Assembly (NCBI RefSeq): GCF_006345805.1
Contig: NC_043003.1
Coordinates: 7,378,001-7,442,000 of the forward strand
Direction: 5' to 3'
DNA from: Octopus sinensis
Taxonomy: Eukaryota
Length of the DNA: 64,000 nucleotides
Made by a program: the position numbers and the translations under genes. Under the pieces are notes generated by a model that made no database searches, was not told the origin of the DNA, and saw nothing but the letters and a program-made list of their open reading frames with translations. Each line of letters opens with the position of its first letter. Within the stretch, counting starts at the first letter, position 1. Of this stretch, positions 23,431-55,694 are shown in pieces.

Positions 23431-25594
23431 ATCACTGATCTAAAATGATACAGTATGCTCAGTTGTGAGCCTTGTTTCACTCATCACAGAGAGATCTGTG
23501 ATGACACAGATTGGTGATCGTTCAAAGAATCTGCTTGGACTGCAAAAAATGAACCCCGAGGACCATCCACAATACTCAGGACAACTTGACAGGTCTCAGA
23601 ACAAAACTTATTTATTCCATAGGTTCTATTATTCATTTAACATGGTACCTTTTGTGTGGGGGCGGGACCAAACACCTATGATAAACAAAAAGAGACGTAA
23701 CTGTCAAGTACTGGATTCCCATATTGGTAAGTTACCTATTTTAATACTTGGTTGCAATTCTCTTCTCGGAACCTTCTTTCCTCAATTTGCTGCTTTCTGG
23801 AACTCACTACTATCGTCTCGTTTCCAAATTCAGAACTGGGTTGTTAATATATTGGATCCTCTTCTTTCTACTGGGCTGGAATCTTTGAGTCATCATCAAA
23901 ATGTATCTTCGTTGTGTCTTTTACGTAAATATTTCCTTGACCAACCTGTGCTGGTGGAATGTAAAAAGCACCATCTGAACGTGGCCGATGCCAGCGCCAC
24001 CTTGACTGACTTCCGTGCTGGTGGCATGTAAAAAGCATCATCCGATCGTGACCGTTGCCAGTCTCCCCTGGCACCTGTGCCAGTGGCACATAAAAAGCAC
24101 CCACTACACTCATGGAGTGGTTGGCGTTAGGAAGAGCATCCAGCTGTAGAAACCTTGCCAGATCAGACTGGAGCCTGGTGCAGCCTTCTGGCTTCCCAAA
24201 CCCCGATCGAACCGTCCAACCCATGACAGCATGGAAAACGGACGTTAAACGATGATGATGATGATGATTTCCTTGACCGTTGTCCTGATGACCTTTCTGG
24301 TTTACCCCTCTCTGTCAAATGTTTTAAACTTGTCCCTCGCTTCCCTGCCCAGCTGCATCATTTCTCTGTTCAGCTTCCTGTTAGTCACAAGTCCTTCTCT
24401 TCTAATTGCTTCTTTCCTTGAACTGGTGCTTTCTGGAACCCACTACCATAGTCTTCTTTTCCTCTGGTCTATTATATTCAGTCCTTTAACTTGTTAACAT
24501 TTAAACACACCATATCCAGCCCAAACATTCTAAATGCTTGTGGTATTTCGTCCGCCACTGTGTTCTGAGTTCAAATTCTGCCGAGGTCGACTTTGCCTTT
24601 CATCCTTTCGGGGTCGATAAATTAAGTACCAGTTATGCACTGGGGTCAATGTAATCAACTTAATCCATTTGTCTGTCCTTGTTTGTCCACTCTGTGTTTA
24701 GCCCCTTGTGGACAATAAAGAAATAAGAAGCCTGCACCAAACTTCTGTGGGTGTTTTGGCAGGAGTTTTACAGCTGGATGCCCTTCCTAACACCAACCAC
24801 TTAACAGAGTTGACTGGCATTCTGAGTGGTCAAGGGTTAAACCAGCCATATCCAGCCCAGATATTCTACTTGTTGTATGTTCAAACTAACCAGATATAGC
24901 CTCTCACACCTACCCAACAATGCCATTCTAAAAATAAACAATCACATCATTGAAGTCTCAAAATTGTGAGATAATGCATAATTAATTTGAAACAATGTAA
25001 ATAAATAAGCAGCATTGCATTTGACAGAGTGATCTGAATGCTAAAGGATTAAGCTTTCATCCCTTTTGAATTTGTTGGTCCCTTCTTTTCCTTCCTTGTA
25101 GTCCCTTACACTACAATGGCTTTGTGCCTTGTTTACAAAAAAAATTACTTAAAAATAAAATTAATTCATGTAGCTTTCTGATATGAAAGTCACACATCCT
25201 TTTGTCCTTATAATTTTAAGGGATGGCACCCCCTGTTGTTAATAGTGGAAGAAGAAGGATTGGTTCCTGGGAAAGAAATTCCAGGGTTTCTCTTTTTTTC
25301 TCAACAATTGAGGGTTTAATTCTTGACTGAGTCACACACACATTTATTTGTCAGTGTTACTGATAAATCTTTTATCTTTCATCTTTTACTTGTATCAGCC
25401 ATTGGACTGTGGCCATGCTGGGGCACCATCTTGAAGGGTTTAGTTGAACAGATCAACCCCACTACTTATTTTATAAGTCTGGTACATATTCTATCTGTCT
25501 CTTATGCTAAACTGCTAAGTTATGGGAATGTTAACAAACTAATACTGGCCATCAAGTAGTGGAGGGACACAAACACACACACACACACACAGTT

Positions 25595-31040: not shown

Positions 31041-31742
31041 CAGTGCGTAACTGGTACTTAATTTATCGACCCCAAAAGAATGAAAGGCAAAGTCGACCTC
31101 GGCAGAATTTGAACTCAGAACATAACGGCAGACGAAATACCTATTTCTATTTCTTTACTACCCACAAGGTGCTAAACACAGAGAGGACAAACAAGGACAG
31201 ACAAACGGATTGTCGATTATATCGACCCCAGTGTGTAACTGGTACTTAATTTATCGACCCCGAAAGAATGAAAGGCAAAGTCGACCTCGGCAGAATTTGA
31301 ACTCAGAATGTAACGGCAGACGAAATACCTATTTCTATTTCTTTACTACCCACAAGGTGCTAAACACAGAGAGGACAAACAAGGACAGACAAACGGATTG
31401 TCGATTATATCGACCCCAGTACGTAACTGGTACTTAATTTATCGACCCCGAAAGAATGAAAGACACAGCCGATCTTGCGGAATTTGAACTCAGAACGTAG
31501 CAGCAGACGAAATACCTATTTCTTTACTACCCACAAGGTGCTAAATACAGAGAGGACAAACAAGGACAGACAAATGGATTAAGTCAATTATATCGACCCC
31601 AGTGCGTAACTGGTAGTTAATTTATTGACCCCGAAAGGATATGTCGACCTCGGCGGAATTTGAACTCAGAACGTAATGGCAAACAAAATACCGCTAAGCA
31701 TTTTGTTTGGCATGCTAACGATTCTGCCAGCTCGCCGCCTTT
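31041..31742 (-). mobile_element. Tandem array of SINE family B (one head, ~183-188-bp headless units)
   Basis: The motif CAGT(G/A) recurs at 31041, 31229, 31417 and 31600. A single head GGCGGCGAGCTGG lies at ~31740. Confidence 0.88.
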
Positions 31743-40034: not shown

Positions 40035-40611
40035 TTGATCACAGAGCTCCAGGCGATCCAACGTAGCTACATGAAGAAGATAGCCTCTATGCAGAATGTG
40101 AGCTACTGGGAAAGACTCAAGAGATTAAAACTATATTCCTTGGAGCGTAGCCGGGAAAGATATGCCATAATATACATCTGGAAGATCCTGGAGGGACGTG
40201 TCCTAAACTTTGGCATCGAGAGTTACGCAAATGCCAGAACTGGGCGCCACTGCGTGGTGCCTAGGACTCCAAACTTGCCATCAAGATGTAGGACAAGATT
40301 CTGTGATAGCCTGGGCTTCCGAGGCCCACAGCTCTTCAATATCCTCCCGAAGAACCTAAGAGACCTGCATGGGGTAGATGCAGATGTCTTTAAAATGAAA
40401 CTGGATCTCTTCCTGTCAGGTGTCCCAGATGAACCAACTTCCCAGCAGGAGGTGCAGATGAGGGCAGCTGCATCGAACTCTCTCATGCACCAAATGGCAG
40501 TTGCTAAAAAGCCTTCGTGAAGTAAAACCAAGTAGCAACACCAAATGGCGGTGCCCCAGCATGGCCACAGCTCATAAGCTGAAACTAGAATCAATCAATC
40601 AATCAATCAAT
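40035..40611 (+). mobile_element. 3' end of a third CR1/L2-type LINE, with (ATCA)n tail
   Basis: LQAIQRSY...SYWERLKRLKLYSLERSRERYAIIYIWKILEG...GPQLFNILP...FKMKLDLFLSGVPDEP. Confidence 0.88.
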
Positions 40612-42829: not shown

Positions 42830-43545
42830 TAGATGTCGCTGCTGGAGACGATGGTGAGCAGTGATCTCTTAACTCTCACCACCACCACCACCACTACTAC
42901 TATGGTGATGTTGGTAGTAGTACTCCAATGAAAGTGGCTTTAAGTAACAGAAATATAACCACCACCACTGCTAGTAGTAAGAACAGAGCGATTACTAGCA
43001 CTACTATAACGGTTATAATTATTACTAATTAGTTAATGTATTTGGTTGCACCGTTTAACATCAGGAAGATAGCAATTAATTTTTATTGTTTTGCTTTTTA
43101 TCCACCATTTCTGTTTTATTTTTATTTCATCTCGTGGTAGTGGTCTCTATTTCTTGTCATTTTCTGAGTGGGTCGATGATGTTTAAATCTATTTCTTTAT
43201 TTCCACCACAATGCAAAAAAAAAAATCTAAAAATAAATTTGAACCCCCCCACTTTCCTAATATAAGAATTACCATTTCACACTAACCAGCTATCTTTACC
43301 ACACCCTTCTTTTCAAAATTGAGGTGCCTTAACTATAATTAATTCAGTAATTAAAAAACAATTAGTGTCCAATAGTTAGTTCACTAGTTAATCCCTCAGC
43401 ATCTAATCTGGCCAAATCCAGCCCCAAAATTCTGTTTTATTTTCAAACCAACTGGATCTGACCCCTCAGACCTACCCTACAATATCGTTCTAGAAATAAA
43501 TAATCCCACCATCAAAATCTCAAAGCTATGAGATTATCTAGGATT

Positions 43546-44174
43546 AAATCACTCACCAAGTCCTTTGTGAGCCGCTCTCCGGCTATCTATCTGTGGCTTT
43601 ACATAGCTATGGTAAGACCTCACCTGGAATTTGCATCACCAGTCTGGAACCCTTATCTTGCTCAGAATATTAATCGTCTGGAAGAATACCCTGCATCAGG
43701 CATTTGCCATATTCTGAACGCCTTACTTCCCTGGGCATGGATACATTGAAACTCCGACGTCTGGCAGCTGACTTGGCAGACACCCATAAAATTATTAACC
43801 ATCTTACAAACAATAACTCTGAGCACCTTTTCAAACTCCACCTGTCTAACACCCGTGGACATGTTTACAAAGTCAGAAAACAGCACAGCTCCCATGACTT
43901 TCGGAAACATTTTTTCACGCTGAGAGTTGCTGAAGCATGGAACAAACTGCCGGCATCAGTTGTTAGTTGTCGGAGCACTGCATCCTTCAAAACTTCCATG
44001 CTTCCTGAGATTCGCCAACACTACACCTGATTTCCTCCCCTCCATACACACGCAAGCATGTATCTGACTCATACACTGTTCACTTTCCAGACATTTGTAC
44101 ATTACTGCATATGCTTTATATGCACTTTTGACAAGTTGTGGTGCACCTGAGCACTGTATACAATAATTTCATTA
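43546..44174 (+). mobile_element. 3' end of a second CR1-clade LINE family
   Basis: MVRPHLEFASPVWNPYL...(deletion)...YSERLTSLGMDTLKLRRLAADL...FFTLRVAEAWNKLP...HYT*, followed by a 3' UTR ending in ATT repeats. Confidence 0.9.
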
Positions 44175-47826: not shown

Positions 47827-47871
47827 TTAGAGTTTTCCAAGTTCATCAAGGTAGGCAGCAAATAGTTTGGT
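47827..47871 (-). CDS. CNDP2: CNDP2 last coding exon (TKLFAAYLDELGKL*)
   Basis: Acceptor tttacAG at 47873-47872, phase 0, stop TAA at 47829-47827. Matches the CNDP2 C-terminus TKMLAAYLYE. Absent from the ORF track. Confidence 0.9.
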   Translation of the reverse strand, partial: TKLFAAYLDELGKL

Positions 47872-48815: not shown

Positions 48816-49314
48816 TGCTTTACACATGGTTTCTGTGGCTGGATGCCCTGCCTAACACCAGCCACTTCACTGAATGTACTGGGTGCTTTTTATGTGGCAC
48901 CAGCACCAGTGCTTTTTGGGGTCTTAGGGAAGGGAATGTGAATGGGGGAAGAAAGCTGACAGAGTGTTGCCCCTCAAGGTCATGCATTACCACGGTGGTT
49001 TTAGGATATTAATTCTGTTGTGGTGGGTAGGCTTTCTCGAGTATCACAGGCTTCTTTCAGTTTCTGTCTAACAAATTCACTCACAAGGCTTTGATTCTAC
49101 TGGGGCTATAGTTAAAAAAACAAAACAAAAAAGAAACACTTGTTCAAAGTGCTATGGAGTAGGACTGAACCAGAAACCACAGGGTTGGGAAGCTAAATCC
49201 TTAATCACACAAATATCCTTCGCAATATTGCGGTTCACCTATTGCAGTTTATTATTTAAGCTTATGTCATTTCCTTCGTGATGTAGTTTTGCATTTATAA
49301 TATAATATATTCTT

Positions 49315-49690
49315 TTATTCTTCTACTTGTTTCAGTCAGTTGACTGCGGCCATGCTGGAGCACCGCCTTTAGTCGAACAAATCGACCCCAGGACTTATTC
49401 TTTGTAAGTGCAGTACTTATTCTATTGGTCTCTTTTGCCGAACTACTAAGTTACAAGGACATAAACACACCAACATCGGTTGTCAAGTAATGGTGGAGGG
49501 ACAAACACATCATACACACACACACACACACATATGACAGGCTTCTTTCAGTTTCTGTCTACCAAATCCAGTCACAAGGCTTTGGTCAGCCTGAAGCTAT
49601 AGTACAAGACACTTGCCCAAAATACCACACAGTGGGAATGAACCTGGAACTATGTGGTTAGTAAGCAAGGTACTTACCACATAGCCATGC
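49315..49690 (-). mobile_element. SINE family A, host of the U6-5.8S-SINE insertion
   Basis: Its head region is interrupted at 49701; head-like sequence resumes after 50185. Confidence 0.82.
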
Positions 49691-49701
49691 CTGTACTTCT
49701 T

Positions 49702-49933
49702 ATTTCTTTATTGCTCACAAGAGGCTAAACACAGAGGGGACAAACAAGGACAGACAAAAGGATTAAGTCAATTACATCGACCCTAGTGCATAACCGGTAC
49801 TTATTTAATCGACCACGAAAGGATGAAAGGCTAAGTCGGCCTTGGCGGAATTTGAACTCAGAACATAGCAGCAGACAAAATACCGCTAAGCATTTTGCTC
49901 GGCGTGCTAACATTTCTGCCAGCTCGCCGCCTT
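49702..49933 (-). mobile_element. Full-length tRNA-like SINE 'family B' forming the 3' part of the U6-5.8S-SINE chimera
   Basis: Head AAGGCGGCGAGCTGGCAGAA, B-box-like GAGTTCAAATTCC, tail ...AATAAAGAAAT, as in other copies in the window. Confidence 0.9.
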
Positions 49934-50078
49934 GGATGGAGCCCCGGGACGATGGGATCCTGGGGCCCGCAATGTGCGTTCGAGGTGTCGATGTTCACTG
50001 TGTCCTGCAATTCACATCAGTTCATGCGGATAGCCGCGCTCTTCATCGACGGATGAACCGAGTGATCCCCTGTCCTTG
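49934..50078 (-). pseudogene. 5.8S rRNA retrocopy (145 nt, slightly 3'-truncated)
   Basis: Minus strand carries GGATCACTCGG...GTCGATGAAGAGCGCGGC...GTGAATTGCAGGACACA...CATCGACACCTCGAACGCACATTGCGG, the conserved 5.8S motifs. No ITS or 18S/28S flanks. Confidence 0.92.
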
Positions 50079-50184
50079 AAAATATGGAATGCTTCACAAA
50101 TTTATGTGTCATCCTTGCTCAGGGGCCATGCTAATCTTCTCTGTGTCATTCCAATATTAGAATATGTACTGCCGTAGCTAGTAC
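50079..50184 (-). pseudogene. U6: Full-length (106 nt) degenerate U6 snRNA retrocopy
   Basis: Minus strand reads GTACTAGCTACGGCAGTACATATTCTAATATTGGAATGACACAGAGAAGATTAGCATGGCCCCTGAGCAAGGATGACACATAAATTTGTGAAGCATTCCATATTTT. About 13 differences by eye from remembered human U6, several of them CpG decay. No U6 promoter upstream. Confidence 0.95.
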
Positions 50185-50396
50185 ATGCCTGCACCTCTTG
50201 CCACACAGCCACGCCTGTGCCTATATATACAAATTATAAAAATAATAAAAAAAATATACAGTACTGTTTCTACTTTGTGGATTTTCACCGGTCATGGGGG
50301 GTTTTGGAATGAAATACCTGTGACAGACGAGGGATTACTGTATATAGAAAATGCAGATTCTAATTAAACAACTCAGATAATTAGTAAGACACTAAC

Positions 50397-50563
50397 CCCT
50401 TTGATGAAATTGCTGATGTTGATTTTCTCATTCTGGGAGTGGGCCCCATCATCACAAGCACCCATGGGAAGCAGCAAAACATTTTTGTTAGTTGCTTGTT
50501 CCAGAGTGAGGGTCACTGGAATGCTACCGCCTTCACGGGTCATGTCAGGTTCTACGTCATACA
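50397..50563 (-). CDS. CNDP2: CNDP2 exon ([55 protein letters not shown])
   Basis: Acceptor ttccAG, donor GTTAGT. 167 nt (2 + 55 codons). Contains REGGSIP and the metal-ligand GAHSQNEK motif. Confidence 0.95.
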
Positions 50564-52015
50564 CTGGAAAAAACAAAAGAGAAATTAAACTTTAGTCACT
50601 GGGAAAATGGGGATCTTTGGTTTTAGGTATATATAATTGTGGAATTGATAATGAAACTGAAATAACCTGGGAAAATACAAAAGCAGACTTGGAATATTTT
50701 GAGTAAATGAAACGAATATTTAAATGCTTAAAAGTCACTTTTGTGAATGTCATTATTTTAAAATCATCATTATATATATATATATATATATCATCATCAT
50801 CATCGTTTAACGTTCGTTTTCCATGCTAGCATGGGTTGGACGGTTCGACCGGGGATCTGGGAAGCCAGAAGGCTGCACCAGGCTCCAGTCTTATCTGGCA
50901 ATGTTTCTACAGCTGGATGCCCTTCCTAACACCAACCACTCCGTGAGTGTAGTGGGTGCTTTTTACGTGCCACCTGCACAGGTGCCAGATGAGGCTGGCA
51001 ACGGCCATGGTCGGATTGGTGTATTTTATGTGCCACCGGCACGGAAGCCAGTCGAGGCGGTGCTGGCATCGGCCACGAGTCGGATAGTGCTTTTTACGTA
51101 CCTCCAGACCAGGGATCCTGGCTGGTTCAATTTGATTTCGATTGCCCCAACATGTCTTCGCAAGCAAAGGGGGTTGGCATGGGTGCCTGTCGTACGGTCG
51201 GATTGGTGTATTTTACGTGTCACCGGCACGGAAGCCAGTGGAGGTGGCGCTGGCATCGGCCACGAGTCGGATAGTGCTTTTTACGTACTACCAGACCAGG
51301 GATCCTGATATATATATATATATATATATCATCATCATCATTTAGCGTCCGCTTTCCATGCTAGCATGGGTTGGACGGTTCAACTGGGGTCTGTGAAGCT
51401 GGAAGGCTTCATCAGGCCCAGTCAGATCTGGCAGTGTTTCTACGGCTGGATGCCCTTCCTAACGCCAACCACTCCGTGAGTGTAGTGGGTGCTTTTTACG
51501 TGCCACCCGCACAGGTGCCAGACGGAGCTGGCAAACGGCCACAAACGGATGGTGCTTTTACGTGTCACCGGCACAGGGGCCAGGCGAGGCTATATATATA
51601 TATATCTGTCTCTCTCTTTACAGGGCCAGCCATCTCTACAATTAGTAAATGCTGTCAGATCTCAAAGGACTACAAAGTCTGGCTTTGGACAAGCAAAACC
51701 TTCTACAGATGTTACAAACATGTTCAGACTGCAAAGTATCTAGGATTAAGATCAAGATTATGTTTATATTTACAAAGTGCTTATTTCAAAATGAACAATT
51801 TTAAAATGTTTTTACAACCTTCTTGTCAGAGTAATTGATTTTCCGTTATCTGCTCCCAGGCTTCAACACCCACAATAAGAGCCTTGATGTTGTTCTTGAC
51901 AACACCCCTAAAATGTTTCTAAGGTTTGTGTCTCATGATTCCAGGGACGGAAATCATACACTTTCCAACCCCCTAACCATGCAGCTGTTTCAGGACTGTC
52001 CTTTCTGCTTTTGCT

Positions 52016-55348: not shown

Positions 55349-55694
55349 GATACACTCGCCTCCTTATGAGAGCTCAAAATCTCTCGTGGAAGCGTCATCC
55401 AACCAAAGTACAAATATATGGGAAACTACCACCAGTATCATCTCTTGTGAAAGGTAAGAGAGTCCAGTTTGCTGGACATTGTTGTAGAGCTGCAAACGAG
55501 GTAATTTCTACTCTTCTTCTCTGGAAGCCATCTGCTCGCGATACCAGAGGGCGCACACTCTCCTACCCTGATGTAATCTCCAGGGATACAGGCATCCAGC
55601 AACAGGACCTCCGTAATGCTATGATGGACCGTGAAGTCTGGCGTAACATAGTAAGTTCCATTGTCTCGATCATGGTCGAACAATGATGATGATG
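55349..55694 (+). mobile_element. RTE/RTEX-like LINE 3' end
   Basis: YTRLLMRAQNLSWKRHPTK...RVQFAGHCCRA...LLLWKP...AMMDREVWRNIV, then a (TGA)n tail. Confidence 0.82.

Follow-up and report, generated by a model that had tools for sequence, protein, structure and literature searches.

A U6, 5.8S and SINE_A unit in the last intron of CNDP2

The 64,000 nucleotides of Octopus sinensis DNA analysed here (contig NC_043003.1, positions 7,378,001 to 7,442,000, hereafter the window) carry, on the minus strand, exons of CNDP2, the gene for cytosolic non-specific dipeptidase. The last intron of this gene (50396-47872) contains a 483-bp unit (50184-49702, minus strand), sense relative to the gene, in which copies of the U6 small nuclear RNA (snRNA), of the 5.8S ribosomal RNA (rRNA) and of a short interspersed element (SINE) that we call SINE_A follow each other without spacer and in one shared orientation. 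The unit is a chimeric retrocopy mediated by a long interspersed element (LINE): its parts abut, a direct repeat surrounds it as a whole, its 3' part is one on which reverse transcription can be primed, and the site is empty in a related species. The limits given for the three parts in an initial annotation, which was made from the letters alone, all hold when examined with cmscan (RF00026 and RF00002) and by SINE alignment (Table 1). The location that it had proposed, inside an older SINE (SINE_B) of the last CNDP2 intron, was confirmed by identity to the SINE_B consensus and by exon mapping.

Table 1. Features of the CNDP2 locus around the three-part unit (window coordinates)
Feature	Position	Strand	Basis or remark
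CNDP2 penultimate coding exon, residues 400-455	50397..50564	-	tblastn, 100% to O. sinensis XP_029638577.1 (P0241)
Extra host SINE_B head copy, 25 nt (GGCACAGGCGTGGCTGTGTGGCAAG) + one A	50196..50221	-	22-24-nt repeat with 49695-49673
15-bp direct repeat, left copy AAGAGGTGCAGGCAT	50185..50199	-	abuts U6 5' end
U6 snRNA retro-pseudogene, full-length, 106 nt, four-T end	50079..50184	-	cmscan RF00026
5.8S rRNA retro-pseudogene, 145 nt	49934..50078	-	cmscan RF00002
SINE_A, full-length copy, 232 nt, 3' 'driver' part	49702..49933	-	alignment to other copies
15-bp direct repeat, right copy AAGAAGTACAGGCAT	49687..49701	-	abuts SINE_A 3' end
Host SINE_B body, older element that took the insertion	49306..49697	-	alignment to family
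CNDP2 last coding exon (TKLFAAYLDELGKL*)	47827..47871	-	exact match, TTTACAG acceptor before it

For U6, the RF00026 match runs from 50184 to 50078 on the minus strand (100.1 bits, E 8e-25) and covers model positions 1-105/105. The copy terminates in ...CCATATTTT, the next base being C. Its 5' stem (window 50184-50166) is kept perfect by a compensatory A3-U17 pair, identical in O. sinensis and Octopus vulgaris, at a place where human U6 has G3-C17; this variant was probably already present in the source gene, and so would reflect native octopus U6 sequence and not decay. The conserved CCCCUGCGCAAGG segment is changed in the O. sinensis copy and unchanged in that of O. vulgaris. The copy does not have the marks of a functional U6 gene, which would be conserved by purifying selection behind type-3 RNA polymerase III (Pol III) promoter elements: the sequence upstream of it is the SINE_B head, and O. 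bimaculoides has no such copy.

For 5.8S, a product of RNA polymerase I, the RF00002 match (50081..49920, minus strand, 80.7 bits) extends too far, because its final ~14-18 model positions (~138-154) are placed on the SINE head without real matches; this leaves 50078-49934 as the 5.8S part. Its 5' end lies at most a few nt away from where the mature end would be expected and its 3' end is short by roughly 6-16 nt, while 2-4 nt (AAGG) at the border with SINE_A could be assigned to either partner. The three parts abut within ±1-4 nt, and the junctions as a whole are placed to ±1-6 nt. The RF00026 and RF00002 matches are the sole Rfam matches across the window: no internal transcribed spacer (ITS), 18S, 28S or further rRNA was matched there, and the 5.8S copy directly abuts U6 on one side and the SINE on the other. 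It is not a gene of a ribosomal DNA (rDNA) unit, as it is not embedded between ITS1 and ITS2.

The SINE_A copy aligns over positions 1-232 to the other window copies. The first base of the consensus of seven other full-length copies (AAGGCGGCGAG) falls exactly at 49933, and the consensus closes with ...AAAGAAAT(A) precisely at 49702/1; overall the inserted copy is 90.6% identical to its consensus. Its tail is the family 3' end, on which a reverse transcriptase (RT) can prime, and the unit contains neither poly(A) nor L1. No transfer RNA (tRNA) was found in the SINE copies or consensuses by ARAGORN or by lenient Rfam searches; A- and B-box-like motifs were spotted in SINE_A by eye, and transcription by Pol III would be in keeping with them. 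All three parts are pseudogenes in decay, with CpG transitions prevailing among the changes that separate the O. sinensis and O. vulgaris copies, and none has an evident function for the host gene. Direct look-ups in public assemblies of the open reading frame (ORF) spanning 5.8S and SINE_A, and of the ORF of the adjacent exon, returned no record.

The unit is present or absent as a whole in three Octopus species

The orthologous loci of O. vulgaris (L001), Octopus bimaculoides (L003) and Argonauta hians (L002) were compared with that of O. sinensis (L004, 100% identical to the window). The intron of Argonauta has diverged too far for use as an outgroup, which leaves three informative species. 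O. vulgaris, whose assembly is independent, has the whole unit at L001 92511-92992 with 94.8% identity and the same flanking repeats. Its junctions are the same base for base, so that an assembly chimera, a risk attached to the initial annotation, is ruled out. Identity between the two species is 98.1% for U6, 94.5% for 5.8S and 93.5% for SINE_A, and the O. vulgaris copies score 104 bits (U6) and 82 bits (5.8S) against Rfam; the seven differences within 5.8S are all at CpG. The divergence of the three parts is in the range of that of the neighbouring intron and host SINE. Because the unit is shared by O. sinensis and O. vulgaris, its insertion predates their split.

In O. bimaculoides, the site lies between two collinear anchors (window 50607-50222 = L003 26231-26624, 88.8%; window 48419-47353 = L003 28157-29221, 88.4%), and neither U6 nor 5.8S nor SINE_A was found between them. 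The conserved flank (...TTTTTATAATTTGTATATATA) is followed, from L003 26659 onward, by an uninterrupted SINE_B head, GGCGCAGGAGT GGCTGTGTGGTAAG TAGCTTGC; in this species the TA run of the focal site has grown to ~50 bp. The flank-abutting SINE_B has 6 of 21 derived substitutions in common with the sinensis/vulgaris host, against 2 of 34 for a younger SINE_B located 370 bp downstream. It is therefore the orthologue of the host element, and the site is truly empty. The presence of a single 15-bp repeat, expected there from the initial annotation, was verified in part: the one uninterrupted SINE_B head holds 11 of the 15 repeated bases, whereas the first four (AAGA) do not lie beside it. No orthologue carries the SINE without U6 and 5.8S, and O. 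bimaculoides is devoid of all three, so that presence in the three species is all-or-none. Over the DNA surveyed, the window yielded one match each for U6 and 5.8S, and the 98 kb from O. vulgaris only the orthologous copy; the 65 kb from O. bimaculoides plus Argonauta yielded no match.

The proposal that three RNAs were inserted as one LINE-mediated unit is thus supported by the all-or-none distribution, and also by the direct repeats. In a shuffle test, the flanking repeat gave p = 0.006 for the whole unit and p > 0.5 for every sub-insert. No direct repeat longer than 4-5 nt surrounds U6, 5.8S, U6+5.8S, 5.8S+SINE_A or SINE_A alone, and no A-rich or LINE-like tail is present at either internal junction. 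Without an internal target-site duplication (TSD) or tail, U6 and 5.8S had no means for a separate target-primed insertion. As for the outer ends, a 14-15-bp repeat abutting the 3' end of the SINE_A consensus resembles what is seen at ordinary SINE_A insertions, which have TSDs of 16-18 bp. These observations support the entry of U6, 5.8S and SINE_A in a single insertion.

Footprint of the insertion

The 15-bp TSD of the initial annotation stands in that two 15-mers abut the ends of the unit, and of the whole unit only, with 13 of 15 bases identical; the arrangement is more complex than it had stated in that the 15-mer is nested within a repeat of ~25 nt. The host SINE_B begins with the last 11 nt of the right 15-mer. 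In O. vulgaris the left 15-mer is AAGAAGTGTAGGCAT and the right one is the same as in O. sinensis, from which the ancestral pair would have matched at about 14 of 15 positions. The ~25-nt repeat arises from an extra 26-nt copy of the SINE_B head, which is not at the O. bimaculoides empty site and is specific to the sinensis/vulgaris lineage; no such head duplication was found in other SINE_B copies across ~270 kb of octopod DNA.

If X denotes the first 11 nt of SINE_B and Y the following 14 nt, the empty site reads TA-run, X, Y, remaining SINE_B, and the filled site reads TA-run, X1 Y1, A, X2, [U6-5.8S-SINE_A], AAGA, X3 Y2, remaining SINE_B. Here X1Y1 is GGCACAGGCGT GGCTGTGTGGCAAG (50221-50197), X2 is GGTGCAGGCAT and X3Y2 is AGTACAGGCAT GGCTATGTGGTAAG. 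The left 15-mer is thus made of AAG (end of Y1), A and X2, and the right one of AAGA and X3; AAGA, which is not next to the SINE_B head in the empty site, derives from the extra 26-nt head duplication.

Two readings of this footprint were considered. According to the first, which we hold to be the probable one, a 26-bp tandem duplication of the head came first and the chimera was then inserted with an ordinary 15-bp TSD. The 15-mers do abut both ends of the unit with zero filler, and ordinary SINE_A insertions have their 16-18-bp TSDs against the same consensus ends. Furthermore, the derived bases T3 and A10 are common to X2 and X3 and not in X1, and X1Y1 and X3Y2 differ at 5 of 25 positions whereas the ancestral 15-mers would differ at about one. 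According to the second, which is possible and less well favoured, everything happened in a single event with a TSD of ~25 bp (X1Y1/X3Y2). The 5' junction would then contain a 12-nt filler (A+X2) and the tail 3-4 additional bases; mispriming on the AAG microhomology could have led to copying of the filler from the right-hand junction. Three points speak for this second reading: the SINE_B head duplication is unique in the ~270 kb, the first reading requires two rare events to coincide within 4 nt in the same lineage, and the other two SINE_A TSDs likewise start with GG. Scenarios other than these two are improbable. Either way, the repeats are derived from the target and bracket the whole unit.

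The very few copies available for comparison show TSDs starting with GGTA for the two sister SINE_A insertions, AAGA for the focal 15-mer and GG for the alternative ~25-nt TSD. Two other accounts were considered and rejected. The extra head is not the remnant of a first SINE_B with the host as a second one (O. bimaculoides has two), as the host shares 6/21 derived states with the flank-abutting copy and 2/34 with the second. Nor is there support for reading AAGAAG as a constant tail of this SINE_A subfamily, by which the TSD would shrink to 9 bp, another member being followed by unrelated sequence. A 5'-truncated SINE_A of the same subfamily (CAATAAAGAAAT, window 24706-24730) is followed by AAGAAG as in the three-part unit; the agreement may be coincidental or may mark a tail extension that varies between copies, and it bears on where the TSD starts.

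Probable template jumping and its alternatives

The unit probably results from a single target-primed insertion of a three-RNA complementary DNA (cDNA), made by RT template jumps in the ancestor of O. sinensis and O. vulgaris after the split from O. bimaculoides. The RT of an element lacking long terminal repeats (non-LTR), the putative LINE partner of SINE_A, would have nicked the older SINE_B of this intron in its head, begun synthesis at the 3' tail of a SINE_A RNA and copied that RNA to its very 5' end. It would then have jumped to a 3'-shortened 5.8S rRNA, copied to or near its 5' end, and from there to a mature U6 at its 3' oligo-U, copied to its first base, after which the cDNA would have been joined to the target DNA, a short stretch of it being duplicated. 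The order 5'-U6-5.8S-SINE-3', with the native SINE 3' end at the target, matches target-primed reverse transcription (TPRT) starting on the SINE RNA and followed by two template changes. The order of copying, the part played by template jumping instead of an earlier ligation of RNAs, and the LINE partner are inferred. For Magnaporthe and mouse, tripartite chimeras flanked by TSDs have been explained in print by two successive template switches (PMC2104539).

The LINE on which SINE_A depends was presumably the mobiliser. The absence of poly(A) implies that it was not L1-like in its tail requirement, and LINEs of the RTE clade are active in octopus (PMC9115989). In the window, the ORFs at 40035-40520 (+), 43528-44030 (+) and 55366-55686 (+) resemble, by eye, C-terminal parts of non-LTR ORF2; Pfam returned no family at E<=0.01 for the LINE-like window ORFs.

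Several points weigh against a template-jump origin. A LINE with the SINE_A tail was not found in the sequence at hand, and ARAGORN does not call the SINE_A consensus a tRNA. The footprint is not a clean TSD, the extra 26-nt head copy being either a second, earlier event or the product of a complex resolution of the 5' junction. With three informative species only, an intermediate state could have existed. Lastly, the start of the 5.8S copy fits either the natural 5' end, a signature of template jumping, or an internal break, a signature of ligation, the Rfam consensus being uninformative over the first ~12 nt; two metagenome scans for a cephalopod 5.8S gave zero matches and then one chance match that is not rDNA.

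The strongest competing explanation, which we regard as unlikely, also posits one insertion, of a chimera, or at least of its U6-5.8S half, pre-made as RNA: an RtcB-type ligase would have joined the cyclic phosphate of U6 to the 5'-OH of a cleaved 5.8S, and the 5.8S was possibly also ligated to the SINE RNA, the whole being reverse-transcribed as one template. Measured against the usual metazoan start, the 5.8S copy may be 4-6 nt short at its 5' end, which would fit an endonucleolytic 5'-OH, and its shortened 3' end could leave a cyclic phosphate or a 3'-phosphate; the 5' end of mature 5.8S, on the other hand, is a monophosphate. The U6 copy is complete with an oligo-U end, as in the U6/L1 chimeras made through RtcB (PMC6789731), and the U6/5.8S junction is compatible with template jumping and ligation alike. 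The 5.8S/SINE_A junction is more telling. RtcB joins a 2',3'-cyclic phosphate donor to a 5'-OH acceptor, and ligation is strongly reduced by a 5'-triphosphate (PMC6789731). The junction being at consensus base 1 of SINE_A, the run-off point of the RT and the place where a Pol III transcript would be expected to carry its 5'-triphosphate, it fits ligation poorly and would favour a template jump.

The unit could instead belong to a propagating composite element, a SINE whose head had been extended by U6 and 5.8S, or be a secondary copy of a chimera formed elsewhere. SINE heads derived from snRNA, 5S and 28S rRNA are indeed known (PMC4494074; PMC11838501). Copy number was seen within ~270 kb of octopod DNA only, where one locus and its orthologue were found. 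In addition, a U6-first element would lack its own promoter, and the internal promoter of SINE_A would start transcription downstream of U6 and 5.8S. Animal U6 genes need upstream promoters. We consider this possibility very improbable.

Similarly improbable is a series of two or three insertions in the common ancestor of O. sinensis and O. vulgaris, with SINE_A arriving first and U6 and 5.8S, jointly or in turn, landing later at its exact 5' boundary; Doucet et al. 2015 (PMC4476161) put forward this possibility for chimeras of three parts. The small number of informative species leaves room for intermediates, and the nested repeats imply that possibly more than one rearrangement took place at this spot. 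The similar divergence of all three parts argues neither for nor against different ages. Such insertions would, however, have had to strike with base precision twice, at base 1 of SINE_A and at the start of 5.8S, to leave every sub-part free of a TSD and neither U6 nor 5.8S with a tail behind it, and to mobilise U6 and 5.8S without a LINE-type or A-rich 3' end of their own. As to a mis-joining of repeats during assembly, for which the repeat density of the region might be invoked, it can be dismissed, given that the same junctions, flanks and nested repeats are present in the separate O. vulgaris assembly, with 5% point divergence throughout the unit.

The host gene and the surrounding repeats

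The CNDP2 exons of the window map to residues 234-469 of the O. sinensis protein XP_029638577.1 with 94.6-100% identity, and the position of the last coding exon (47871-47827) sets the limits of the last intron. The annotated CNDP2 spans differ widely, from 92 kb in O. vulgaris (L001 3001-94930) to 36 kb in O. sinensis (L004 3001-38808) and 26 kb in O. bimaculoides (L003 3001-28748); the gap reflects either repeat-driven intron growth (e.g. a SINE_A array) or a gene model covering more than one gene. A second CNDP2-like gene lies directly upstream of the Argonauta gene (L002 1-2237) and O. sinensis has a paralogue that is 76% identical (P0124, P0130), which indicates that CNDP2 is duplicated in octopods.

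The SINE_B family (~390 nt) is very abundant in the window. The host copy, whose head is broken by the insertion, is 86.9% identical to its consensus, versus 90.6% for the inserted SINE_A; these values are consistent with a younger SINE_A nested in an older SINE_B. TA-rich sequence or (TA)n precedes nearly all SINE_B copies (e.g. 12545, 11267, 48436, 36957, 50222; L003 26600-26658), which suggests a target preference of SINE_B for TA repeats. In O. bimaculoides, the orthologous SINE_B is cut off at about position 217, and right after it comes a lineage-specific insertion (L003 26875-27531), made of a ~150-bp fragment of another type of SINE ending in GATGATGATGA..., and then a full-length SINE_B that is young, with 94.1% identity to its consensus.

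The 3' two-thirds of SINE_A (consensus ~50-232) are also found in head-to-tail tandem arrays of ~183-184-bp units, about 4 of them in O. sinensis (window 31042-31741, minus strand) and about 16 in O. vulgaris (L001 30675-33663, plus strand), with unit junctions reading ...AAAGAAATA|GGTATTTCG. This looks like a satellite-like amplification whose copy number differs between sister species. SINE-like sequences of the Argonauta intron (L002 28395-28445 and 28600-28655) have a 3' module, ...CTCTGTGTTC..CCCTTGTGGC..., comparable to ...CTCTGTGTTTAGCCCCTTGTGGGTAG... of the octopus SINE_A, and this points to an old LINE-derived tail or core shared among octopod SINEs.

Significance of the octopus unit

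RNA-RNA joining in retrotransposition is recorded in nature mainly by chimeric retrocopies, and the debate between template jumping and RtcB ligation rests almost wholly on mammalian L1. The octopus unit provides an independent, dated case outside this system, with an empty site, a SINE without poly(A) as driver and 5.8S as passenger. L1, as this case shows, is not a requirement for the co-mobilisation of U6, and the passage from 5.8S to base 1 of a SINE is a junction that ligation explains poorly. The unit also illustrates the capture of small-RNA modules ahead of a SINE, the presumed path to new SINE heads, and can be used as a presence/absence marker grouping O. sinensis and O. vulgaris against O. 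bimaculoides.

A broader proposal, which we put forward tentatively and hold to be rather doubtful, is that a non-L1 LINE RT of octopods routinely jumps from the 5' end of SINE RNA onto abundant nuclear RNAs, such as 5.8S and U-tailed U6, and so makes multi-part chimeras. If true, such jumps would supply raw material for new SINE heads, and the co-mobilisation of snRNA and rRNA would be ancient, independent of the LINE clade and not reliant on L1 poly(A) biology or RtcB.

Comparison with known chimeric retrocopies

The initial annotation held that no triple chimera of this kind had been described. This is wrong in general, since tripartite chimeras are already known in a fungus, in mouse and in human; the published examples include Magnaporthe WEIRD/Mg-SINE/MGL, with a 14-bp TSD, and mouse B2/U6/L1, with TSDs of 15-16 bp (Gogvadze et al. 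2007, PMC2104539). The octopus unit has in common with the Magnaporthe and mouse tripartites three RNA copies placed head to tail in one orientation without spacer, a 14-16-bp direct repeat around the whole, and a retroelement as the 3' priming part; with the mouse one, it also shares a full-length U6. It differs from them in that it has no LINE sequence, its 3' part being a complete SINE, in that 5.8S occupies the middle, in its cephalopod host and in the extra 26-nt duplication of its footprint. Its mobiliser would be neither the mammalian L1 nor the fungal MGL.

Mammalian U6/L1 chimeric pseudogenes, which reportedly go back to work of Buzdin in 2002-2003, are another relative. They are the subject of Doucet et al. 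2015 (PMC4476161) and Moldovan et al. 2019 (PMC6789731). In both cases, a full-length U6 that ends in its U-tract directly adjoins a second RNA copy, and the insertion bears the hallmarks of TPRT; the octopus U6 is likewise complete and ends in a mature oligo-U tract. The acceptor, however, is 5.8S rather than a 5'-truncated L1 or an mRNA, and the part of 3' partner falls to a SINE whose tail is non-A, not to L1 or a polyadenylated mRNA. The octopus unit thus lacks poly(A), comes from a non-mammal, and has a 5.8S/SINE junction to which RtcB is poorly suited.

L1 chimeras with structural RNAs (5S, 28S, tRNA, 7SL, 7SK and Y RNA) have also been catalogued (PMC11838501 / PMC13174262). Like the octopus unit, they include rRNA fragments, often truncated, inserted together with a retroelement in one event; unlike it, they are bipartite, L1-linked and mammalian, and their catalogue is without 5.8S. 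A resemblance is found as well with SINEU, SINE3/5S and SINE28, in which a small-RNA 5' module is fused to a LINE-dependent 3' module and whose heads are thought to arise by the same kind of template jumps. These families are multi-copy, with an internal promoter in the head, whereas the octopus unit is, as seen, a single decaying copy whose U6 has no internal promoter.

There is no mention of 5.8S as a chimera component in PMC2104539, PMC4476161, PMC6789731 or PMC11838501. To conclude, what appears to be new, within the searchable literature, is the composition of the octopus unit and the group to which its host belongs: a 5.8S component, a mollusc genome, and a LINE-free chimera driven by a complete SINE with a non-A tail.

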